From Basidiobolus meristosporus CBS 931.73 (taxonomy: Eukaryota > Fungi > Basidiobolomycota), in NCBI GenBank assembly GCA_002104905.1, contig MCFE01000220.1, forward strand, positions 1 to 64,000: a DNA stretch of 64,000 bases, given 5' to 3'. The notes under the pieces were generated by a model. The model saw nothing but the letters and a program-made list of their open reading frames with translations. It had not been told where the DNA came from and did no database searches. This document shows, piece after piece, positions 12,806 to 28,200 of this stretch. The position numbers were made by a program, and so were the translations under genes. How positions within the stretch are numbered: position 1 is the stretch's first letter; the number at the start of each line of letters is the position of its first letter.

Positions 12806-14604
12806 TTAGAGTTTGGAGTTTAACTTGGTGTTGGATAGTTTATCCAGAAGCTGGCGATCTTCCATCGTTAATCGTTTGTGAGGAAGGATGGACGAGCCCT
12901 CTCCTCTACGAGGCACATCCTTCTCGGGAATGCCAGTCTCGCGGGAGATTAACGCCACTACACGAGGTTCACAGAATCGGCCCTGGCATAAGCCCATACC
13001 AGCTCTAGTACGCTTCTTGATGGAGTCTACAGTGTGCGCAGGCAAAGGTCTTCCTATGGCGTCTTTAATTTCCGCCTCAGTGACCCTCTCGCATCTGCAA
13101 ATAATATTTTTGCATGGATCTGGATCGTCAATCACCCCATCAAAGTCCTCACCCTTAGGCACTATGACGGCATTGCGATAGGGATTGAAATTAGGATTCG
13201 GTTCAAGTCCGACCACCACAGATTTGGATGGACAGGTAGCGCAGTTATTTTTACACGAGTCCGCTTCTTCTCCAGTTGTGGAGCATTTGCCCCTCCGTAC
13301 ACGTCCGCGCTGCTGTATACGTTCCCGGAGAACACAGTTGGAGATGATGTCGGTGACGAGTTTGGCTATAGCAGGAGAGCTCGTTAGCCCTGGCGAGTCA
13401 ATTCCAGCCACATTAACGAATCTCTTCACTTTGGACTCCTCAACAATGAAGTCGTACTGGTCCGTCTTCGCGCGATAGCCGGTATATGAGGTCAGGGCTT
13501 TCTTGGCATTAAACCCGGGAACCAAGTGTCTGGCCGCATTCAGTATAAATTGGGCGACCTGTTGGTTGTCCATATCGCGATCCTGGTCAACCACGTTTCC
13601 ACCAGGGGCCGTTGCTTGAATCTCAGCAGAGACGCTTCTCGAGGTAGGGCCCAATAAGAGATTACCATGGTAGGTCGGACTCACCAGAATGCCTTTGCCG
13701 ATGATCTTGTTAGGCAACGGGAATAGGACATGATTTGCTAGATGTCCTTGTGACTTGTCCAAAATGATGTATTCTCCCTTTCGAGGGACGATACGGAAAT
13801 GATCGACCCCCACCATCGCTGCTACTTTGTCGGAATATCTACCCGCGCAGTTGATAACGAATCTAGTACGGAAGCTGTTTCGAAGAGCGGGTGAATGTGG
13901 ATCAGATGGCTGGTTATCTGGCTTCCATTTGCCTGTGGTTCCATATGAGTAGTGGTGATGGTGGTTGTATTGGTTTTGATAAGGAAATAGGCATTTGGGT
14001 CATCTTCCTCGTCTGGCTGATTTTCATAGCCAATCTTGTGAGGTAGTTTTTGTATATCAATTACCTCATGGTTCAAGAGGATTTCTACCCCGTTCTGAAC
14101 TGCATTCTCGGCCAAGGCTATAGTATATTCATAGGGCGAAACAAGTCCTGCGTCAGGACAATACAGAGCGGAGTAAACCTGAGGGTTAATGTTGGGCTCC
14201 ATAGCAAGGACTTCTTCTCGGTTTAATATGAACAGACGATTGACACCGTTAGCTTTGCCGTTAGCATATAGAGCCTCCAGAGCCTTATTATCCTCTTCTG
14301 AGAAGCCAACTACTAAGGAGCCTACCAGCTTGAACCCAAAATTGAGCTCCTTGTTGAGGATGGGGAAGAGTTGATTTCCTTGATGAGAAACGATGGATTT
14401 TAAGGTTCCGTGCTTTTCGTCATAACCACCGTGTATAATACCCGAGTTGGCTTTAGAGGCACCTTGAGAGACATCGTCAGACTTCTCGAGGACTAGTACT
14501 TTGAGACGATACTTGCTCAACTCCCTTGCGATGCAGGAACCTACTGCTCCTGCACCGATAACAACAATGTCATACATTTCCGTGTTGCTGGAGTGTGTTG
14601 ACAT
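12806..14604 (-). CDS. Bacterial-type FAD-dependent oxidoreductase (GlpA/glycerol-3-phosphate oxidase-like) with C-terminal BFD-like [2Fe-2S] domain; split by a 1-nt frameshift
   Basis: YDIVVIGAGAVG FAD motif, SKANSGIIHGG, RFVINCAG (in the shifted frame), PRKGEY, GIDSPGLTSSPAI and CRCERVT..IKKRTRAGMGLCQGRFC. No GT-AG intron explains the frame change at ~13840-13990. Confidence 0.85.
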
Positions 14605-15272
14605 GGATGGATTGAATGGTAAGTGAAAATTGAGAATTTGATAGATACTGATGGAAGAGGAAACATTCAAATGCTCTATTATAAATCCAATGCGGTTTCT
14701 GAAACCCACGACTGCTTTTTTTCCTCGAATTTTCCTCAGATTGAGAGGCACTAAGACCTCTGCCTGATTGGTTCCATGGCCATCAGAATGCAGTTAAATA
14801 CAGGGTATATTAGAAGCACATCGCATTTATTCCCAGATCAAATGGTCTATTCTAGACTTTCAGATGATTGCCATTCTGGTGTAACTTCTCTCCACAACAA
14901 TGCGGATTTTTTGTAAGTACGGTGCTCCAATCACATCCACAACCTACTCCAGATGGACAGTTCTACACCATGAGGCGTACTGGAATTAAATGCTAGCTTT
15001 AAATTGCTGCTTATTCTAAAAATGTGCTTGTGGGAACTGAACGGGCTAGACGAAACTGTCTTATCGATATCTACATCTAGTTTTAAGTTAGCTCGCTCCA
15101 CTTCGCATAAACATCAACTCCAGCCCAGATAGAGGCCGAGATCACTTAGGGTTGGAGTTTATTCAGGTGGGTTATTGTGAATTGATGTGCATATTCTCGA
15201 TCAGAAATATATATATACTCGAATTAAGAAATACATTTAGCACAAGCAAGCGGTAATGGCCATTTTCCCGAT

Positions 15273-16460
15273 TTAGTAGCCACCACTGTTGTAGCCACCA
15301 TTGCGACCGCCAGAGTATCCACCGTCGTGACGCATCATATCCACCATTGATGACCGCCATCGATATCCACCGTTGTGTCCACCAGTATAGCCACCATGTC
15401 TGTTGTATCCAACCCGAATCTTGCCATCCAAGAGATTGCACACACTAGGATTGACGCTGACTCCAACAAGCTGCGCTGCTCCAACAATCACTCGACACTT
15501 CAGTCTCTCGAGACGGAGAAGGTCGATGTCGACACCCAAGCGAAGGCAAACGCCTAGATCGATTTTGGCGCCACACAAGGTGTGGATCTTGGCAATGATG
15601 GTCTCGCACGACTTGGGGTAGCGGGGCTTTCCGGTCGTTGGTGGGTAGGTAGGAGGCTGGCAGCTCTTGCATGGCTTCTCTGGAGTCGGTGGGTAGGATG
15701 GAGGGTTGGGAGGCTGACAGCTCTTGCATGGCTTCTCAGGGGTGGTGGGGGGATAGGCCGGAGGCTGTACAGGAGGCTTGCCAGGCTCACCAGGCTTACC
15801 AGGTTTGCAAGGCTTCTCTGGCTCAGTGGGGGTCTTGGGTGGCTTGGATGGCTTGTCGTGCATGACACTCACCTCGCCATCTCTCTTGATGTGCTTCTTC
15901 CCGTTGCCTCCAAGGGCCAGGCAAACCTTCGCGTCAGCCTTGATCCCCAGGATGTTGGCTGCGGCACAAGCCTCAACACAGGTCATCTTGGATGGGACGC
16001 CGCTGATGAGGGGGACCAGCTTGATGATGACATCGTTCAAGCAGACCTTCGCATCCACCTTGATGCCGAATGCGGCGAGTCGCGCGACCACGCCGTTACA
16101 CGCAGATTTAGCATGTTTGGCAGAGACTGAGGTGGTCTTGGACTTCTTGCCATGTCCAGCAGAGGCCAAGCACACCTTCGCGTCAGCCTTGATTCCCAGA
16201 ATGTTGGCTGCTGCCACGGCTTCTATGCATGTCATCTTGGATGGAACACCGCTGATGTGAGGGATCAGCTTGACAACGGTGTTGTCCAAGCAGACCTTAG
16301 CGTCAGCCTTGACCCCAAAGACAGCGAGCCTTGCCACTACTCCGTCGCAGACGGACTTCGAGTGTTGAGCGCTGATGGGAGTGGCACTCAGATTGATCGG
16401 CTCTTCGGCCATTACAAGCACAGCAGGTAACAAAGCTAAGGCGCTAGCGAAGAGCTTCAT
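15273..16460 (-). CDS. Secreted Cys/Pro/Gly-rich repeat protein, copy A
   Basis: Signal peptide MKLFASALALLPAVLVMA, two Cys-containing repeats, a KR site, a PK/YPP-rich region, a third Cys domain and a GGYN-rich tail. Confidence 0.85.
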   Translation of the reverse strand: MKLFASALALLPAVLVMAEEPINLSATPISAQHSKSVCDGVVARLAVFGVKADAKVCLDNTVVKLIPHISGVPSKMTCIEAVAAANILGIKADAKVCLASAGHGKKSKTTSVSAKHAKSACNGVVARLAAFGIKVDAKVCLNDVIIKLVPLISGVPSKMTCVEACAAANILGIKADAKVCLALGGNGKKHIKRDGEVSVMHDKPSKPPKTPTEPEKPCKPGKPGEPGKPPVQPPAYPPTTPEKPCKSCQPPNPPSYPPTPEKPCKSCQPPTYPPTTGKPRYPKSCETIIAKIHTLCGAKIDLGVCLRLGVDIDLLRLERLKCRVIVGAAQLVGVSVNPSVCNLLDGKIRVGYNRHGGYTGGHNGGYRWRSSMVDMMRHDGGYSGGRNGGYNSGGY

Positions 16461-17116
16461 GGTGTCGACCGATCGAGAAAGAGGGGGCAAAGGAGAGATG
16501 AGTTTGAATTGATGTGCCTGCCGGTGGAAGATCGTATATTTATAGCAAGCATTCTCTTCCGAAGATCAGTAAGTCAGTGACATACTGAGCCAACAACCAG
16601 TTCGGAGTGAGTCGAATATTTGGATACACTACCTGTAGTTGAGCACATAATAACTAAGCACTGCAATGTGAAACTTGACGATATTTCTAGTTTTCCCAAA
16701 ACGAAGAATTGCTGGTAGCATCTGATTATCATTCTTCCTCAGCTAGTGCCATATCAGACCCAAACATTCAGGTATGAGATGATGGTATGTTTGGATTCAC
16801 AAATTCGATCTATTGGTGAACAAAAGGGTTTCCTTAAATTGCATGCACCGCTGATCATTGAATTCATAGATATGCCAGAAGTATTGCTTGGTTCATCTTA
16901 CAAACTAAATGTAACCGGATTCTCAAGCATGCCAAAGTTCCAGTTATTTGCACTTGGGGTTGTGCGTCCAAATATACCTCCCCCGCCCTAGACAGATTAG
17001 AGACTCAACGAACTTTGGAGGAGACTGCTTGCTATAAATATACGATCTCCCGCCAGCAGTCAAACAATTCAAAGTCATCTCTCCTCTACTCCCCTCTTTC
17101 TCGATCGGTCGACACC
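16461..17116. promoter_or_regulatory. Bidirectional promoter spacer 1 (656 bp) with outward-facing TATAAATA at each end
   Basis: GCTTGCTATAAATATACG upstream of both ATGs. The spacer is the near-exact reverse complement of 20738-21393. Confidence 0.7.
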
Positions 17117-18358
17117 ATGAAGCTCTTCGCTAGCGCCTTAGCTTTGTTACCTGCTGTGCTTGTAATGGCCGAAGAGCCGATCAATCTGAGTGCCACTCCC
17201 ATCAGTGCTCAACACTCGAAGTCCGTCTGCGACGGAGTAGTGGCAAGGCTCGCTATCTTTGGAGTCAAGGCTGACGCTAAGGTCTGCTTGGACAACACCG
17301 TTGTCAAGCTGATCCCTCACATCAGCGGTGTTCCATCCAAGATGACATGCATAGAAGCCGTGGCAGCAGCCAACATTCTGGGAATCAAGGCTGACGCGAA
17401 GGTGTGCTTGGCCTCTGCTGGACATGGCAAGAAGTCCAAGACCACCTCAGTCTCTGCCAAACATGCTAAATCCGCGTGTAACGGCGTGGTCGCGCGACTC
17501 GCCGCATTCGGCATCAAGGTGGATGCGAAGGTCTGCTTGAACGATGTCATCATCAAGCTGGTCCCCCTCATCAGCGGTGTCCCATCCAAGATGACCTGTG
17601 TTGAGGCTTGTGCCGCAGCCAACATCCTGGGGATCAAGGCTGACGCGAAGGTCTGCCTGGCCCGTGGAGGCAATGGGAAGAAGCACATCAAGAGAGATGG
17701 CGAGGTGAGTGTCATGCACGACAAGCCATCCAAGCCACCCAAGACCCCCACTGAGCCAGAGAAGCCCTGCAAACCTGGTAAACCTGGTAAACCTGGCAAG
17801 CCCAGCAAACCTCCTGTCCAGCCTCCGGCCTATCCCCCCACCACCCCTGAGAAGCCATGCAAGAGCTGTCAGCCTCCCAACCCTCCATCCTACCCACCGA
17901 CTCCAGAGAAGCCATGCAAGAGCTGCCAGCCTCCTACCTACCCACCAACGACCGGAAAGCCCCGCTACCCCAAGTCGTGCGAGACCATCATTGCCAAGAT
18001 CCACACCTTGTGTGGCGCCAAAATCGATCTAGGCGTTTGCCTTCGCTTGGGTGTCGACATCGACCTTCTCCGTCTCGAGAGACTGAAGTGTCGAGTGATT
18101 GTTGGAGCAGCGCAGCTTGTTGGAGTCAGCGTCAATCCTAGTGTGTGCAATCTCTTGGATGGCAAGATTCGGGTTGGATACAACAGACATGGTGGCTATA
18201 CTGGTGGACACAACGGTGGATATGATGGCGGTCATAATGGTGGATACAATGGCGGTTACAACGGTGGGCATAATGGCAGTTACGATGGGGACCGTAACGG
18301 TGGTTATAATGGTGGTCATGATGGAGGATACAATGGCGGTCGTAACGGTGGCTACTAA
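17117..18358 (+). CDS. Secreted Cys/Pro/Gly-rich repeat protein, copy B
   Basis: Same architecture; longest GGHNGGY tail. Confidence 0.87.
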   Translation: MKLFASALALLPAVLVMAEEPINLSATPISAQHSKSVCDGVVARLAIFGVKADAKVCLDNTVVKLIPHISGVPSKMTCIEAVAAANILGIKADAKVCLASAGHGKKSKTTSVSAKHAKSACNGVVARLAAFGIKVDAKVCLNDVIIKLVPLISGVPSKMTCVEACAAANILGIKADAKVCLARGGNGKKHIKRDGEVSVMHDKPSKPPKTPTEPEKPCKPGKPGKPGKPSKPPVQPPAYPPTTPEKPCKSCQPPNPPSYPPTPEKPCKSCQPPTYPPTTGKPRYPKSCETIIAKIHTLCGAKIDLGVCLRLGVDIDLLRLERLKCRVIVGAAQLVGVSVNPSVCNLLDGKIRVGYNRHGGYTGGHNGGYDGGHNGGYNGGYNGGHNGSYDGDRNGGYNGGHDGGYNGGRNGGY

Positions 18359-19564
18359 ATTCCGTTAAGCATTTGCAGCTTATTGTGATTCTGATATACC
18401 TCTTTGTATTTGTTGATAAGCTCATGCAAATTTATGTGAGGTTTTAAATGTTCATTTGGTAATTAACTCTAAATAAATCCACTTACATGATCAACTCGAT
18501 CCGCATATTGCTGGATGACTAGAGGTGGATTGGCGGCTCAAATAAGTAATGCATCTTCAAATTGCTTCATGGTCGGACTGGAAATTGTGTTGCAAATGCT
18601 GACTAAAGGAGTATTATGATCGGTCTAGCTAATGGTGGATTTTATATAGTATTGTCCCAAAGGTTCCCTCAATCTCCCTTCGCCATAATCAGTAACTTTG
18701 AGTCAGTATATGAGATGCAATACACTACCAATTGCGAATCTGAGTATCCATAGTGAGATGACATTTCGAGTAGAACACTATACAATAAAAAGCGCTTGGA
18801 ATCAATCTACGGTTCCTACTTAGACCATCTTGGGCTTGAAAAGTATTATAATCTATATATTACTTTTATATTTTCATATTGATTTGAGTATTTCCACTGT
18901 ATTGCCTATCGATGATTTGTCTGGAATTAACAATCAGTAAGAATCGTAGTAGAGACTGTATCGGTTGGTGTAATGGTAGCCTCAAGGCCAACTTTAACTG
19001 TGAGATCTGGGATTGTTATATTGGCAACTACTAACTATGGAAAGGTGTAGGTCTTACTGCTTCACTTTTGGAATACTAAAATTCAATTCAGACCAAGCCT
19101 CTAGCTGAACGCACCTGTACATATGTTCTGTTTAGTTCATGGCTCCAACTATTGTCTAATTTAAGTGTATCTTGATAGTATGTATACAGGCCATTAGAAC
19201 ATAACAATATAATCGTGTGTACTTGAGAGATCAAGGCTCTGCCTTAATTCAAATACATCAAGATTGCTAAAATATTTCATTGTGCCTTTCACTTATTGAA
19301 TCCCCAGTTTTCTCCCTATAAACTTCATATGACTAAACAGTTGCCTTAAAAATGCTAATACAAGCAAGCCTCTAATTCGCGATATAATTAATTTCCCCAC
19401 AGCGTTCTTGTCTACACTATAATAACAGTAACATTTGCTGCTCAACCTCCAAGCCATATATGTATTAATATAGACATTCAATACTTTATTAATAAACAAA
19501 TGTTAACAGTTCGCATTAAAGAGTATATTACGCACTGACGAATGATCGCAGATATTATCAATAT

Positions 19565-20737
19565 TTAATAGCCACCACTGTTGTATTCACCATTGCGACG
19601 GCCATTATATCCACCATTATGACCGCCATCATATCTACCGCTGTGTCCACCAGTATAGCCACCATGTCTGTTGTATCCAACCCGAATCTTGCCATCCAAG
19701 AGATTGCACACACTAGGATTGACACTGACTCCAACAAGCTGCGCTGCTCCAACAACCACTCGACACTTCAGTCTCTCGAGGCGGAGAAGGTCGATGTCGA
19801 CACCCAAGCGAAGGCAAACGCCTAGATCGATTTTGGCGCCACACAAGGTGTGGATCTTGGCAATGATGGTCTCGCACGACTTGGGGTAGCGGGGCTTTCC
19901 GGTCGTTGGTGGGTAGGTAGGAGGCTGGCAGCTCTTGCAAGGCTTCTCTGGGGCCGGTGGGTAGGATGGAGGGTTGGGAGGCTGACAGCTCTTGCATGGC
20001 TTCTCAGGGGTGGTGGGGGGATAGGCCGGAGGCTGGACAGGAGGCTTGCTGGGCTTGCCAGGCTTACCAGGTCTACCAGGTTTGCAAGGCTTCTCTGGCT
20101 CAGCGGGGGTCTTGGGTGGCTTGGATGGCTTGTCGTGCATGACACTCACCTCGCCATCTCTCTTGATGTGCTTCTTCCCATTGCCTCCAAGGGCCAGGCA
20201 GACCTTCGCGTCAGCCTTGATCCCCAGGATGTTGGCTGCGGCACAAGCCTCAACACAGGTCATCTTGGATGGGACACCGCTGATGAGGGGGATCAGCTTG
20301 ATGATGACATCGTTCAAGCAGACCTTCGCATCCACCTTGATGCCGAATGCGGCGAGTCGGGCGACCACACCGTTACACGCGGATTTAGCATGTTTGGCAG
20401 AGACTGAGGTGGTCTTGGACTTCTTGCCATGTCCAGCAGAGGCCAAGCACACCTTCGCGTCAGCCTTGATTCCCAGAATGTTGGCTGCTGCCACGGCTTC
20501 TATGCATGTCATCTTGGATGGAACACCGCTGATGTGAGGGATCAGCTTGACAACGGTGTTGTCCAAGCAGACCTTAGCGTCAGCCTTGACTCCAAAGATA
20601 GCGAGCCTTGCCACTACTCCGTCGCAGACGGACTTCGAGTGTTGAGCACTGATGGGAGTGGCACTCAGATTGATCGGCTCTTCGGCCATTACAAGCACAG
20701 CAGGTAACAAAGCTAAGGCGCTAGCGAAGAGCTTCAT
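19565..20737 (-). CDS. Secreted Cys/Pro/Gly-rich repeat protein, copy C
   Basis: Same architecture; ends GEYNSGGY. Confidence 0.87.
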   Translation of the reverse strand: MKLFASALALLPAVLVMAEEPINLSATPISAQHSKSVCDGVVARLAIFGVKADAKVCLDNTVVKLIPHISGVPSKMTCIEAVAAANILGIKADAKVCLASAGHGKKSKTTSVSAKHAKSACNGVVARLAAFGIKVDAKVCLNDVIIKLIPLISGVPSKMTCVEACAAANILGIKADAKVCLALGGNGKKHIKRDGEVSVMHDKPSKPPKTPAEPEKPCKPGRPGKPGKPSKPPVQPPAYPPTTPEKPCKSCQPPNPPSYPPAPEKPCKSCQPPTYPPTTGKPRYPKSCETIIAKIHTLCGAKIDLGVCLRLGVDIDLLRLERLKCRVVVGAAQLVGVSVNPSVCNLLDGKIRVGYNRHGGYTGGHSGRYDGGHNGGYNGRRNGEYNSGGY

Positions 20738-21393
20738 GGTGTCGACCGATCGAGAAAGAGGGGAGTAGAGGAGAGATGACTTTGAATTGTTTGACTGCTG
20801 GCGGGAGATCGTATATTTATAGCAAGCAGTCTCCTCCAAAGTTCGTTGAGTCTCTAATCTATCTAGGGCGGAGGTGGTATATTTGGACGCACAACCCCAA
20901 GTGCAAATAACTGGAACTTTGGCATGCTTGAGAATCCGGTTACATTTAGTTTGTAAGATGAACCAAGCAATACTTCTGACATATCTATGAATTCAATGAT
21001 CAGCGGTGCATGCAATTTAAGGAAGCCCGTTTGTTCACCAATAGATCGAATTTGTGAATCCAAACATACCATCATCTCATACCTGAATGTTTGGGTCTGA
21101 TATGGCACTAACTGAGGAAGAATGATAATCAGATGCTACCAGCAATTCTTCGTTTTGGGAAAACTAGAAATATCGTCAAGTTTCACATTGCAGTGCTTAG
21201 TTATTATGTGCTCAACTACAGGTAGTGTATCCAAATATTCGACTCACTCCGAACTGGTTGTTGGCTCAGTATGTCACTGACTTACTGATCTTCGGAAGAG
21301 AATGCTTGCTATAAATATACGCTCTCCCACCAGTAGTCAAACAATTCATACTCATCTCTCCTCTACTCCCCTCTTTCTCGATCGGTCGACACC
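20738..21393. promoter_or_regulatory. Bidirectional promoter spacer 2 (656 bp), inverted relative to spacers 1 and 3
   Basis: Reverse complement of 16461-17116 across its whole length. Confidence 0.75.
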
Positions 21394-22613
21394 ATGAAGC
21401 TCTTCGCTAGCGCCTTAGCTTTGTTACCTGCTGTGCTTGTAATGGCCGAAGAGCCGATCAATCTGAGTGCCACTCCCATCAGTGCTCACCACTCGAAGTC
21501 CGTCTGCGACGGAGTAGTGGCAAGGCTCGCTATCTTTGGGGTCAAGGCTGACGCTAAGGTCTGCTTGGACAACACCGTTGTCAAGCTGATCCCTCACATC
21601 AGCGGTGTTCCATCCAAGATGACATGCATAGAAGCCGTGGCAGCAGCCAACATTCTGGGAATCAAGGCTGACGCGAAGGTGTGCTTGGCCTCTGCTGGAC
21701 ATGGAAAGAAGCCCAAGACCACCTCAGTCTCTGCCAAACATGCTAAGTCTGCGTGTAACGGTGTGGTCGCGCGACTCGCCGCATTCGGCATCAAGGTGGA
21801 TGCGAAGGTCTGCTTGAACGATGTCATCATCAAGCTGGTCCCCCTCATCAGCGGCGTCCCATCCAAGATGACCTGTGTTGAGGCTTGTGCTGCAGCCAAC
21901 ATCCTGGGGATCAAGGCTGACGCGAAGGTCTGCCTGGCCCTTGGAGGCAATGGGAAGAAGCACATCAAGAGAGATGGCGAGGTGAGTGTCATGCACGACA
22001 AGCCATCCAAGCCACCCAAGACCCCCACTGAGCCAGAGAAGCCTTGTAAACCTGGCAAACCTGGTAAGCCTGCAAGCCCAGCAAGCCTCCTGTCCAGCCT
22101 CCGGCCTATCCCCCCACCACCCCTGAGAAGCCATGCAAGAGCTGTCAGCCTCCTACCTACCCTCCATCCTACCCACCGACCCCTGAGAAGCCATGCAAGA
22201 GCTGCCAGCCTCCTACCTACCCACCAACGACCGGAAAGCCCCGCTACCCCAAGTCGTGCGAGACCATCATTGCCAAGATCCACACCTTGTGTGGCGCCAA
22301 AATCGATCTAGGCGTTTGCCTTCGCTTGGGTGTCGACATCGACCTTCTCCGTCTCGAGAGACTGAAGTGTCGAGTGATTGTTGGAGCAGCGCAGCTTGTT
22401 GGAGTCAGTGTCAATCCTAGTGTGTGCAATCTCTTGGATGGCCAGATTCGGGTTGGATACAACAGACATGGTGGTTATAGTGGTGCACACAACGGTGGAT
22501 ATGTTGGCGGTCACAATGGTGGTTTCAACGGTGTACACAATGGCGGTTACGATGGTAACCGTAACAGTGGCCATTATGGTGGCTACAATAGCGGTCGCAA
22601 TGATGGCTACTAA
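21394..22613 (+). pseudogene. Secreted Cys/Pro/Gly-rich repeat protein, copy D, with a 1-nt deletion (pseudogene or assembly error)
   Basis: CCTGCAAG instead of CCTGGCAAG at ~22070 shifts the frame. The normal C-terminus continues in ORF 22287-22613. Confidence 0.7.
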
Positions 22614-23872
22614 ATCCCGTTGAGCATTTTCTGTTTCTTGTGTGATTCTGATATGCCGTTTGGTATTTGTTTATAAGCTCATGTCTATGCGAGTGAGGTT
22701 CCAAATGTCAATGCAGTAACCTATTGAATAAAAGCCAATTACATGATCAACTTTAATACATTTTGCTGGATTATTGGAGGTGGATTGGTGGCTCAAGTTA
22801 GTACTGTATCTTCAAAATACCTTGTGATTAAACTGGATATTATGGAGCAAATACTGCCTAAAGGAGGACCATGACCGATGTGGTCAATGGGGGATATTAT
22901 ATTTATACAATCTCTCGTGGCGATAACAAGTACCTTCGAGTTGAGGTATTAAATGCAATGCACTACAAATTGGGAAGCTTGGTATGTGTAGTAGGATAAC
23001 GTTCTAGTTAGAGTAACGTACGATACATAATGTATGGAGCTACGCTCCGTCTCTAGACAGGACTATCTCGGCTGTATGTTACATATTTAGGTTCAATTTT
23101 TTTGAAGTAATTCATGCATGTTTCCTAACGATGTTTTGGCTCCAATTGTCGATTAGTGAGAATCATATTGGAGACCATGACGGTGGGCGGAATGCTAGCC
23201 GCAAAGATCACTATTTCGATGGCTACTAAAAGGAAATATGGGTTTTATTGGCTACTTTGAACGACAAAAATGATTTAGGCATTGTTGCTTCAGAATGTGT
23301 ACATGAATCAAGAGATATTGGGTGTCAGTGGCACTTGGCCTGAAGAGGTGTTGACCGGATAGGGAGAAGTCCCAATAAGAGGTACTTCTCGATTGCCGGC
23401 ATTCAATGATGATTGAGTGTCAAACCAAACTAACCAACAAAACAGCCATTCCAACCATCATTGTGGGATATAAATAAATCTTGACGTAAACAAATGAAAT
23501 CTCATAGTGTTTTTATCTAACGCCGAAAAATACATTAATGCCGTATTTTTCAGTGTACCAACTATATTCTCATCTTACTACTAATATACTTGAAATGCAT
23601 AAGCGTATGTCTCTAAAATGGTTGTCTACACTAATGTCGAAGTACTTACGCCATAGGCAGTGTAAGAAGTTCTACTAACTCGACCTTCTCTGCGAAGCTC
23701 TCTTCGCAATAACAACAGCATTTACCACACCATCACCAACTTGTACAGGTGAGCTTTATTCAAAATAGCTATTACATGTAGGCATTCAGCTCTTTGCTAA
23801 TAAGTATATACTAGCAAGACGCAATAAAAGATATGTTACCTACTGCCAAAAAAATACAAATATGAACTATAT

Positions 23873-25000
23873 TTAATAGCCACCACTGTTGTATTCACCA
23901 TTGCGACCACCATTATAGCCGCCGTTACGGTTACTGTCATACCCACTATTATGTCCACTACTGTGTCTATCGGTGTAACCGCTATGTCTGCTGTATCCAA
24001 CCCGAATCTTGCCATCCAGGAGATTGCACACACTGGGATTGACACTGACTCCAACAAGCTGCGCTGCTCCAACAATCACTCGACACTTCAGTCTCTCGAG
24101 ACGGAGAAGGTCGATGTCGACACCCAAGCGAAGGCAAACGCCTAGATCGATTTTGGCGCCACACAAGGTGTGGATCTTGGCAATGATGGTCTCGCACGAC
24201 TTGGGGTAGCGGGGCTTTCCGGTCGTTGGTGGGTAGGTAGGAGGCTGACAGCTCTTGCATGGCTTCTCAGGGGTGGTGGGGGGATAGGCCGGAGGCTGGA
24301 CAGGAGGCTTGCTTGGCTTGCCAGGCTTACCAGGTTTGCCAGGTTTGCAAGGCTTCTCTGGCTCAGTGGGGGTCTTGGGTGGCTTGGATGGCTTGTCGTG
24401 CATGACACTCACCTCGCCATCTCTCTTGATGTGCTTCTTCCCATTGCCTCCAAGGGCCAGGCAAACCTTCGCGTCAGCCTTGATCCCCAGGATGTTGGCT
24501 GCGGCACAAGCCTCAACACAGGTCATCTTGGATGGGACACCGCTGATGAGGGGGATCAGCTTGATGATGACATCGTTCAAGCAGACCTTCGCATCCACCT
24601 TGATGCCGAATGCGGCGAGTCGCGCGACCACACCGTTACACGCGGATTTAGCATGTTTGGCAGAGACTGAGGTGGTCTTGGACTTCTTTCCATGTCCAGC
24701 AGAGGCCAAGCATACCTTCGCGTCAGCCTTGATTCCAAGAATGTTGGCTGCTGCCACGGCTTCTATGCATGTCATCTTGGATGGGACACCGCTGATGTGA
24801 GGGATCAGCTTGACAACGGTATTGTCCAAGCAGACCTTAGCGTCAGCCTTGACTCCAAAGATAGCCAGCCTTGCCACTACTCCGTCGCAGACGGACTTCG
24901 AGTGTTGAGCACTGATGGGAGTGGCACTCAGATTGATCGGCTCTTCGGCCATTACAAGCACAGCAGGTAACAAAGCTAAGGCGCTAGCGAAGAGCTTCAT
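23873..25000 (-). CDS. Secreted Cys/Pro/Gly-rich repeat protein, copy E
   Basis: Same architecture; lacks one KPCKSCQPP module. Confidence 0.87.
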   Translation of the reverse strand: MKLFASALALLPAVLVMAEEPINLSATPISAQHSKSVCDGVVARLAIFGVKADAKVCLDNTVVKLIPHISGVPSKMTCIEAVAAANILGIKADAKVCLASAGHGKKSKTTSVSAKHAKSACNGVVARLAAFGIKVDAKVCLNDVIIKLIPLISGVPSKMTCVEACAAANILGIKADAKVCLALGGNGKKHIKRDGEVSVMHDKPSKPPKTPTEPEKPCKPGKPGKPGKPSKPPVQPPAYPPTTPEKPCKSCQPPTYPPTTGKPRYPKSCETIIAKIHTLCGAKIDLGVCLRLGVDIDLLRLERLKCRVIVGAAQLVGVSVNPSVCNLLDGKIRVGYSRHSGYTDRHSSGHNSGYDSNRNGGYNGGRNGEYNSGGY

Positions 25001-25643
25001 GGTGACGATCAATCGAGAAAGAGGGGAGTAGAGGAGAGATGAGTTTGAATTGTTTGACTGCTGGCGGGAGATTGTGTATTTATAGCAAGCATTCTCCTCC
25101 GAAGATCAATATGCCAGTGACATATTGAGCCAACAACCGGTTCGGAGTGAGACGAATCCTACCGTCGAGAACGACTAACATATCTGTCAGCACTTCGTAC
25201 TACCATGTGAATTATGAGGAGGTTTGTAGCTTCCCTACGAATGGTTGTACCTCAAGGCATTTGATAATCATTCATATAGAGCTGGTGCGAAATCAGACCC
25301 AAACATACAAGCACAAAATGATATTTTGTTTGGGTTCACAAATTTGATTGATAAACAGAAAAGAGAAATGCCCTAAATTACATTTATTGCTGATCATTGA
25401 ATCCGCAGATATGCCTAAAGTAATGTTTGATTCATGCCACAAACCAAATACAACTCAAGCAGCTTCACCTTTGATTGCTGGTACTGGAGTTGTGTACCTA
25501 AATATACCCCCACTCCGGGCAGATTAGAGACTCAACGAACTTTGGAGGAGACTGCTTGCTATAAATATACGATCTCCCGCCAGCAGTCAAACAATTCAAA
25601 GTCATCTCTCCTCTACTCCCCTCTTTCTCGATTGATCGTCACC
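25001..25643. promoter_or_regulatory. Bidirectional promoter spacer 3 (643 bp), same orientation as spacer 1, diverged centre
   Basis: The ends match spacer 1 closely; the middle is only partly alignable. Confidence 0.7.
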
Positions 25644-26792
25644 ATGAAGCTCTTCGCTAGCGCCTTAGCTTTGTTACCTGCTGTGCTTGTAATGGCCGAA
25701 GAGCCGATCAATCTGAGTGCCACTCCCATCAGTACTCAACACTCGAAGTCCGTCTGCGACGGAGTAGTGGCAAGGCTCGCTATCTTTGGAGTCAAGGCTG
25801 ACGCTAAGGTCTGCTTGGACAACACCGTTGTGAAGCTGATCCCTCACATCAGCGGTGTCCCATCCAAGATGACATGCATAGAAGCCGTGGCAGCAGCCAA
25901 CATTCTGGGAATCAAGGCTGACGCGAAGGTGTGCTTGGCCTCTGCTGGACATGGAAAGAAGCCCAAGACCACCACAGTCTCTGCCAAACATGCTAAATCC
26001 GCGTGTAACGGCGTGGTCGCGCGACTCGCCGCATTCGGCATCAAGGTGGATGCGAAGGTCTGCTTGAACGATGTCATCATCAAGCTGATCCCCCTCATCA
26101 GCGGCGTCCCATCCAAGATGACCTGTGTTGAGGCTTGTGCTGCAGCCAACATCCTGGGGATCAAGGCTGACGCGAAGGTCTGCCTGGCCCTTGGAGGCAA
26201 TGGGAAGAAGCACATCAAGAGAGATGGCGAGGTGAGTGTCATGCACGATAAGCCATCCAAGCCACCCAAGACCCCCACTGAGCCAGAGAAGCCTTGCAAA
26301 CCTGGCAAACCTGGTAAGCCTGGCAAGCCCAGCAAGCCTCCTGTACAGCCTCCGGCCTATCCCCCCACCACCCCTGAGAAGCCATGCAAGAGCTGTCAGC
26401 CTCCTACCTACCCACCAACGACCGGAAAGCCCCGCTACCCCAAGTCGTGCGAGACCATCATTGCCAAGATCCACACCTTGTGTGGCGCCAAAATCGATCT
26501 AGGCGTTTGCCTTCGCTTGGGTGTCGACATCGACCTTCTCCGCCTCGAGAGACTGAAGTGTCGAGTGATTGTTGGAGCAGCGCAGCTTGTTGGAGTCAGC
26601 GTCAATCCCAGCGTGTGCAATCTCTTGGATGGCAAGATTCGGGTTGGATACAACAGACATGGTGGCTATACTGGTGGACACACTGGTAGATATAATCGAG
26701 GTCATAATGGTGATTACAATGCTGGGCATGATGGTGGTTACGACGGAGATCGCAATAGTGGCTATAATGGCGGTCATGATGGTGGCTACTAA
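25644..26792 (+). CDS. Secreted Cys/Pro/Gly-rich repeat protein, copy F
   Basis: Same architecture; lacks the same module as E. Confidence 0.87.
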   Translation: MKLFASALALLPAVLVMAEEPINLSATPISTQHSKSVCDGVVARLAIFGVKADAKVCLDNTVVKLIPHISGVPSKMTCIEAVAAANILGIKADAKVCLASAGHGKKPKTTTVSAKHAKSACNGVVARLAAFGIKVDAKVCLNDVIIKLIPLISGVPSKMTCVEACAAANILGIKADAKVCLALGGNGKKHIKRDGEVSVMHDKPSKPPKTPTEPEKPCKPGKPGKPGKPSKPPVQPPAYPPTTPEKPCKSCQPPTYPPTTGKPRYPKSCETIIAKIHTLCGAKIDLGVCLRLGVDIDLLRLERLKCRVIVGAAQLVGVSVNPSVCNLLDGKIRVGYNRHGGYTGGHTGRYNRGHNGDYNAGHDGGYDGDRNSGYNGGHDGGY

Positions 26793-27098: not shown

Positions 27099-28200
27099 TC
27101 AACCAGATATGAATGCCTGTAAGCCCGAAGCACCACACAATGAGACTACACAGCCAGCAGTAAGTAGTCCTCTGAAAATCATTGACCGCCAGTCCCACAG
27201 ATACCACAATTCATCAGCCCATCTTGAAACGGTGACATTCCAACTATTTACCCTATCGTTGTTTTCGACTATTTCCATCAAGAGAGGCTGCCTACAATAC
27301 GGACACGACTTGTCTCCAGGGCCGGATTCCCACCACACCTTGATACAAAACCGATGGGCCACGTGTTGTGACATTTTACAGAAGTTGTACAACTCGTTAG
27401 GAACATATGCTGGCTCGTCACCGTTGAATAGCATACCCTCAGACTCTGATGTTGGTAAATCTCGTACACCTGCACCATAACATATGCAACAGTCAGCATC
27501 CGTAGCTCCGATGGGTGCCGGTCTTCCAATCAAAGTGACTCTAGACCTGCGACGGCAGATTGTATTTAAAAGAAGCAAATGAATTATCTCATCGCACACA
27601 ACAGCAGAGCATGTCAAAGCGATTAACGATGGTATCATTGAATGGGAAATCCTCCCTTGTCGAATCAAACTGAGTGGTGGCTTCGGAAGTTTTCGTAACT
27701 ACAATACTAGGTTGTGAGTAAGAATGGCCAATAATGATGTATTTACACTTCTGGGCTACCCAGTACACCACAACACTTCCACGGCTTAACTTACTTTGTG
27801 ACGCATCCAGCGTAAGACGCCATAGGCCAACTAGCAACGTGAAGTGGTTATTGTAAATCCCGGTCCAACTTGAAGACACGAGTTTAACCGAGCTCTTACC
27901 GTCAAGTGATAGAAAGTAAAGATGCGTTTTTCATCCTCGTTCAGCAACTGTCGCCTAAAGAAGTACCCATGATGTTGCAAGACAGAAGCTTGGGAAAAGT
28001 ATGAGCGTTAACGGTCAGATTACAAGCAACGCCATGTCTTTTCAGGGGGTAAACCTTTTGCCCAAGAGCTGCAGGCAAGTGCCACAGAAACGATACGTAG
28101 ACTCCAGAGCCAATTATCACGATCTGTTTGTAGCATTATAAAGCAAACTTTGCGAAGGGGAAATCCCAAGAATTTGTCGTACGAATATAACAGACAGGAA
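27099..28200 (-). CDS. Membrane protein with RING-variant (C4HC3-like) domain, multi-exon; 5' end uncertain
   Basis: CCICY...FCKMSQHVAHRFCIKVWW..CPYCRQPL flanked by hydrophobic segments. GT-AG introns at ~27.73-28.02 kb. Confidence 0.6.

Follow-up and report, generated by a model that had tools for sequence, protein, structure and literature searches.

The first 64,000 nt of contig MCFE01000220.1, from the assembly of the fungus Basidiobolus meristosporus CBS 931.73 (GCA_002104905.1), carry three tandem head-to-head gene pairs in which the inner part of the middle pair lies in the opposite orientation to that of the first. This stretch is referred to below as the window, and its coordinates are those of the record. 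The three divergent pairs (A<- ->B, C<- ->D and E<- ->F) comprise six single-exon paralogues and recur about every 4.27 kb. The history that very probably accounts for the array is an old tandem triplication whose coding arms were kept alike by gene conversion, with the inner 2.8 kb of unit 2 inverted through homologous recombination and not by a switch. Two of the six genes, C and D, are chimeric.

An inverted cassette and two chimeric genes

The clearest sign of the inversion comes from the spacers between divergent start codons, which measure 656 bp (A-B), 656 bp (C-D) and 643 bp (E-F) from ATG to ATG. Self-BLAST shows that the inverted arms of each unit extend 115 bp upstream of each ATG, leaving unique centres of 426, 426 and 429 bp. 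These centres match their own reverse complements at 48-52% and are thus asymmetric. The A-B centre agrees with the reverse-complemented C-D centre at 419 of 426 positions (98.4%), against 52% in direct orientation, which is background, and the full 656-bp spacers 1 and 2 differ at 18 positions. The A-B and E-F centres are 65% identical in direct orientation and 48% inverted.

The inverted match is not confined to the spacers. In self-BLAST it forms a tract of 2996 nt between units 1 and 2, with 96.7% identity including indels and about 98% over the inner 2.8 kb; the reverse-complement match from about 15360 to 18226 in unit 1 pairs with 22505 to 19628 in unit 2. Within the tract there are 0-4 differences per 100 nt (one bin has 16, mostly indel positions), and just outside it there are 30-70. 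The ends of the tract are sharp and are located in the repetitive tails of the genes. The features of the array are as follows, alpha and beta being the two ends of a spacer and f1 and f2 the tail-to-tail intergenic regions.

15273..16460, minus strand: gene A (395 aa), left-type tail ending ...GGRNGGYNSGGY, 5' end toward the alpha end of spacer 1
16461..17116, no strand: spacer 1 (656 bp), with 115-bp inverted arm ends, TATAAATA in each, and a unique asymmetric centre at 16576-17001
17117..18358, plus strand: gene B (413 aa), right-type tail ending ...GGRNGGY, 5' end toward the beta end of the spacer
18359..19564, no strand: f1, tail-to-tail intergenic region, the old direct homologue of f2
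19565..20737, minus strand: gene C (390 aa), a chimera with left-type tail and 3' flank (as in A and E) and beta-type 5' part and promoter end
20738..21393, no strand: spacer 2 (656 bp), centre 20853-21278, matching the spacer 1 centre in reverse complement (419/426)
21394..22613, plus strand: gene D, a chimera with right-type tail and flank (as in B) and alpha-type 5' part and promoter end (as in A)
22614..23872, no strand: f2, tail-to-tail intergenic region
23873..25000, minus strand: gene E (375 aa), left-type tail, toward the alpha end of spacer 3, with a 57-nt deletion in common with F
25001..25643, no strand: spacer 3 (643 bp), centre 25108-25536, direct relative to spacer 1, 65% identical, with conserved islands
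25644..26792, plus strand: gene F (382 aa), right-type tail, toward the beta end of spacer 3
15360..18226, no strand: unit-1 copy of the recently homogenised tract, reverse-complement match to 19628-22505
19628..22505, no strand: unit-2 copy of the homogenised tract, in inverted orientation

The start codons of the six genes are set by the peptide MKLFASALALLPAVLVMAEEP, which is present six times in the window, and lie at 16460(-), 17117(+), 20737(-), 21394(+), 25000(-) and 25644(+) for A to F. The public annotation includes all six genes, gives the lengths of their products, from A to F, as 395, 413, 390, 398, 375 and 382 residues, and assigns them no Pfam family. The tails fall into two types: A, C and E end in ...YNSGGY (left type), and B, D and F carry the other (right) type.

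Evidence that C and D combine parts of different descent comes from trees of the six arms, each read in the direction of its gene over a span that begins 130 nt before the ATG and ends 2 kb after it, and analysed with IQ-TREE bootstrap in three partitions. Columns 1-600 cover the spacer end, the 5' untranslated region (UTR) and the opening 470 nt of the coding sequence (CDS); here B, C and F part from A, D and E at 100% bootstrap, and A joins D at 98%. The tree from columns 601-1245 is unresolved. The tail and 3' flank split the copies differently, with B, D and F against A, C and E (100%), B joined to D (99%) and C to E (100%). C and D are therefore chimeric, since the 5' trees and the tail and flank trees group the copies incongruently: C has a left-type tail and flank with a right-type 5' part, and D is the mirror case. 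The figures for this incongruence are far beyond chance. The exchange points in C and D fall after about column 593 and before the Gly/Tyr tail begins; the near-identity of the arms over this interval limits their placement to that range.

Individual sites tell the same story. A synonymous Gly codon at A 16314 (GGG/GGA) has G in A and D, and a synonymous Ser codon at A 16104 (TCT/TCC) has T in A and D; a second Gly codon at A 15999 (GGC/GGT), also synonymous, has C in A, D and F and T in B, C and E. Downstream of the genes, the 3' flanks of B and D are 70-77% identical over about 400 nt, of which F shares only about 40 nt.

Much of this layout had been recognised in a preliminary description of the locus, which reported the three head-to-head pairs with their 656-bp A-B and C-D spacers, the reverse-complement relation of these two spacers, the YNSGGY tails of A, C and E, and 3' sequence common to B and D and in part to F. 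The start codons and alignments uphold each of these points. That description also listed three variants pairing A with D and B with C, which are all synonymous as just given, GGC being found in F as well and GGT in E. From these it proposed that the promoter and 5' gene parts had been inverted by crossovers within the CDS, a reading that the incongruent trees (98-100% bootstrap) support. Its suggestion that arm homology and not a site-specific recombinase drove the event is likely to be right, the exchange points lying inside the coding arms.

The intergenic regions show that the triplication and the inverted tract differ in age. In direct orientation f1 and f2 have 60-77% identity close to the genes and about 50% midway. 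Under a simple history, the duplication that copied the f region would also have copied one spacer, and f1 and f2 would be expected to differ about as much as the closest spacer pair does. The observed divergence is more than 23% for f1/f2 and 1.6% for the closest spacer pair. As the flanks are far more diverged than the inner 2.8 kb, the triplication is old and the inverted tract recent, units 1 and 2 having been homogenised much later and in inverted register.

Each of the six genes has its own TATAAATA, a TATA box, ~85 nt before the ATG and within the inverted arm. A three-way alignment of the spacer centres (16576-17001, 20853-21278 and 25108-25536) contains islands such as ATCAGACCCAAACAT, TGTTTGG.TTCACAAATT and GCTGATCATTGAAT amid diverged DNA. 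These conserved islands are candidates, as judged from the alignment, for shared cis-regulatory elements of a bidirectional promoter.

Gene conversion and the route of the inversion

The arms of the array have exchanged sequence repeatedly. Within units, self-BLAST finds inverted arms of 1160-1269 nt with 96.2-96.8% identity (3.2-3.8% divergence). When the 38 biallelic informative sites of the six arms are taken two at a time, 395 of the 703 combinations violate the four-gamete test, and the lower bound on exchange events (Rm) stands at 18. Informative sites pair copies directly (C+E, D+F, A+E), in inverted orientation within a unit (E+F, C+D, A+B) and in inverted orientation between units (B+C, D+E, C+F, A+F). 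Perfect runs reach 405 nt between A and B and 483 nt between B and C, the latter extending into the spacer; the longest between C and D is 164 nt. E and F have in common three 5'-UTR variants and a 57-nt deletion (windows 24100-24200 and 26440-26540) that removes one Pro/Cys repeat of the PEKPCKSCQPP... type. The six arms are in concerted evolution, and conversion tracts usually end at the limits of homology, in the spacer centre and the tails.

Every copy also has private substitutions (14 in D and 18 in E, for example), A being the richest with 22, many of them in the 5' UTR. The linker varies in length, A lacking 9 nt (one KPS/GKP unit) and D having 3 nt more; both the Pro-rich linker and the Gly/Tyr tail change length through repeat slippage. 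Two genes bear smaller defects. In D, a 1-nt deletion at 22071/22072 (GG to G within a AAGCCTGG repeat) breaks the frame into open reading frames (ORFs) 21394-22311 and 22287-22613, a break that the public annotation spans with a 23-nt 'intron'; D is either a young pseudogene or the product of a PacBio consensus indel. The tail of A, compared with B, has two 1-nt insertions (~15362 and ~15349) and a 2-nt deletion (~15332), which leave about 10 codons out of frame, reading RWRSSMVDMMRH instead of Gly/Tyr repeats, before the frame is restored. Single-base consensus errors are a plausible source of both the D frameshift and the A tail indels.

These patterns suggest how the inverted tract might have formed. 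The starting state would have been a divergently transcribed gene pair that had been triplicated in tandem long before. Frequent conversion, in direct as well as inverted register, would have kept the six coding arms alike, with the 3' tails, 3' flanks and spacer centres mostly outside the conversion tracts. In the latest large event, the inner 2.8 kb of unit 2, consisting of the promoter cassette and both CDS up to the tails, would have been replaced or flipped. If a break or gap arose in spacer 2, the near-identity of the two arms within a unit would let both of its ends pair with unit 1 in direct or inverted register, and repair in the latter would copy spacer 1 backwards to give the observed tract in one step. 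A single event of this kind explains both the flip and the recent homogenisation without any switching. Such inverted-register gap repair from the neighbouring unit is the route that we slightly and tentatively favour. A route that is only somewhat less likely has the arms of C and D recombining in a reciprocal crossover (intrachromatid nonallelic homologous recombination, NAHR), accompanied by direct-register conversion between units 1 and 2. In yeast ectopic repair, non-crossover outcomes are the commoner, crossovers making up 10-15%, and 2% divergence reduces repair about 5-fold (PMC6511840). In primate palindromes, spacer inversion by NAHR is common (PMC8327919).

Other rearrangements can be rejected. 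Single inversions between the B and C arms or between the A and D arms predict combinations of tail and spacer end other than those seen. A recent inverted duplication placed between the units is contradicted by C and D themselves, whose tails and 3' flanks match those of E and B as old homologues in corresponding positions.

Several points weigh against the history proposed here, or limit how far it can be pressed. Constraint on the conserved spacer islands could explain part of the high identity between the A-B and C-D spacers, although the E-F spacer shows that most centre positions are free to vary. Recurrent mutation may have slightly inflated the four-gamete count. The two repair routes leave the same end product. 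Finally, the analysis is of one assembly of one strain, and orientation polymorphism among isolates or heterogeneity within a culture is possible. Exact-protein look-ups for B, C and E matched MCFE01000220.1 only and brought up no independent assembly or transcript.

Alternative explanations and related systems

The preliminary description went further than the inversion itself and read the locus as a flip-flop or shufflon giving phase variation, an interpretation that the present analysis does not sustain. The proposal is that the cassettes toggle during growth, driven by arm homology with no recombinase, and so re-pair a promoter side and N-terminal allele with one tail or another. The architecture does invite it: inverted arms of about 1.2 kb surround each spacer, one unit has the opposite orientation, and the spacers of primate palindromes toggle recurrently over evolutionary time (PMC8327919). 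Were it true, the asymmetric promoter sides would be joined afresh to the two kinds of tail of a protein that is secreted in abundance as a wall or adhesive component, and the locus would be a recombinase-free eukaryotic analogue of an invertible switch. Systems that flip frequently retain essentially identical arms. Here the arms within units are only 96.2-96.8% identical, with perfect runs between C and D no longer than 164 nt. Frequent crossing-over would have homogenised them, and divergence suppresses recombination (PMC6511840). Moreover, both genes of a pair are complete and have their own TATA box in either state, so that there is no ON or OFF phase and no single expression site, and the mature N-terminal parts that would be swapped are nearly the same protein. 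Units 1 and 3 share an orientation despite 35% divergence of their spacers, and the one orientation difference on record is accompanied by recent homogenisation of the inner 2.8 kb. The genes annotated in the 10 kb to either side include no recombinase, their products having LRR, AP_endonuc_2, DAO and Fer2_BFD domains or no Pfam family; nor are there short crossover sites at the tract ends, which show only the 1.2-kb coding arms, with identity fading at the Gly/Tyr tails. An active switch is thus highly improbable. Break repair would be blind to spacer orientation, and populations or single mycelia might in principle mix the two states through mitotic or meiotic events, a prospect to which we give very little weight. 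The locus offers no evidence of phase variation, and we infer that the rearrangement is a fixed historical event with little functional effect.

It is also very unlikely that the inner segment of C-D was simply misoriented during assembly. Near-identical inverted arms are a classic source of mis-joins, and the leftover single-base indels in D and in the tail of A point to an imperfect consensus. The genome was sequenced with PacBio long reads, however (PMC7466969), and any read of at least ~1.5 kb from unique f1 or f2 into an asymmetric spacer sets the orientation. The array also lies away from the ends of its contig, which is 123,797 bp long, and the private substitutions in all six copies indicate that these were resolved and not collapsed. 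Unlike the palindromes left by missed adapters, the inverted tracts differ by about 2% and lie 1.3 kb apart. Replication-based template switching between the inverted arms, of the fold-back or fork stalling and template switching (FoSTeS) type, would offer another way to flip the spacer. One yeast study describes template switching at the arms of short inverted repeats that inverts spacers and homogenises arms (PMC8604942). That process is described for short, closely spaced repeats, whereas the arms here are 1.2 kb and the tract 2.8 kb; the tract ends, too, have no microhomology junctions or inserted bases and fade into arm homology. We regard this origin as scarcely probable.

The inversion by homologous recombination favoured above is an instance of palindrome spacer inversion by NAHR, a familiar process, and calls for no new mechanism. 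The locus has the traits of such palindromes: long similar arms around an asymmetric spacer, both spacer orientations among the copies, and arm-to-arm conversion. The palindromes of primate X and Y chromosomes likewise have gene-bearing inverted arms, a unique spacer of variable orientation and gene conversion between arms, with no site-specific recombinase (PMC8327919, PMC3723533), the FLNA-EMD inversion being an instance cited there. The scale is very different, with arms of 1.2 kb and a spacer of 0.43 kb compared with 10 kb to Mb in primates, and the arms are 96-97% identical compared with over 99%. The fungal array also consists of three tandem units, between which exchange in either register is possible, and the comparison made here is among paralogous units of one genome and not among species or individuals.

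Histone gene repeats offer a second parallel. These are tandem divergent pairs with near-identical CDS, diverged intergenic DNA and a shared bidirectional promoter region. The B. meristosporus array has the same concerted CDS, diverging intergenic DNA, shared bidirectional promoter region and tandem amplification; it differs in that one unit has an inverted inner cassette, that two genes are chimeric and that the family is a lineage-specific orphan. The likeness to bacterial shufflons (R64 Rci/sfx) and to fimS and hin is that DNA inversion re-joins 5' and 3' gene parts. The present locus, however, is eukaryotic and has no Rci-, Hin- or FimB/E-type recombinase and no short crossover sites. In a shufflon a single promoter and constant part serves promoter-less segments, whereas here both genes have an ATG, a signal peptide and a TATA box.

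The locus is of value as a small, well-resolved example of concerted evolution in an array of fungal genes, in which the arms remain alike, the flanks drift and one unit has been re-oriented, as can happen because palindromic units are able to pair in either register. For annotation, it is useful to record that C and D are chimeric, that D is possibly a pseudogene or carries a consensus error, and that the family is an orphan.

The protein family and neighbouring genes

The encoded protein begins with a signal peptide, followed by two helical 83-residue repeats with four Cys each, a KR site, a Pro-rich linker of PEKPCKSCQPP repeats and a C-terminal Cys domain, and it ends in a Gly/Tyr/Asn/His tail made of 12- and 24-nt repeats. 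Its Cys residues stand singly (C-x17-C ... C-x18-C) and never as CC. In two word-index searches, and within the sensitivity of that method, all relatives came from Basidiobolus. A Pfam scan of two window copies and four relatives from Basidiobolus ranarum returned only sub-threshold noise, with no hydrophobin match at E<=1. The name 'Hydrophobin', given in UniRef to the B. ranarum relative P0006, is supported neither by a Pfam match nor by the eight-Cys pattern C..CC..C..C..CC..C. The ESM Atlas gave no usable match and a profile search of the PDB no match, and an AlphaFold2 model from a 9-sequence alignment had a mean predicted local distance difference test (pLDDT) score of 35 and was unusable. 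By its sequence, the family is a predicted secreted orphan found only in Basidiobolus.

The B. ranarum relatives have a single N-terminal Cys repeat where the B. meristosporus protein has two. They belong to the same orphan family and likewise occur as clustered, amplified copies; in contrast to the B. meristosporus array, all copies found are on one strand, without inverted repeats. These direct tandem arrays lie at L003 2906-5757, L006 2313-8347 and L007 117-2129. Some of the B. ranarum ORFs consist of the N-terminal Cys repeat only or of the C-terminal Cys domain only, and one copy, P0004, is 56 nt from a contig end, where the repeat may have broken the assembly. As far as the present data reach, only the B. 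meristosporus lineage has the head-to-head unit.

Between 14500 and 27500, neither an Rfam scan nor a tRNA scan gave a match. To the right of the array, an ORF of 179-189 residues (27099-27668, minus strand) has a RING-H2-like Cys pattern (CCICY...CPYCRQPL) and no Pfam family on record. The left neighbour (12806-14751, minus strand) encodes a 592-residue FAD oxidoreductase with a DAO domain and a BFD-like [2Fe-2S] domain, an architecture familiar mainly from bacteria. Basidiobolus is said to carry many horizontally acquired genes (PMC7466969).

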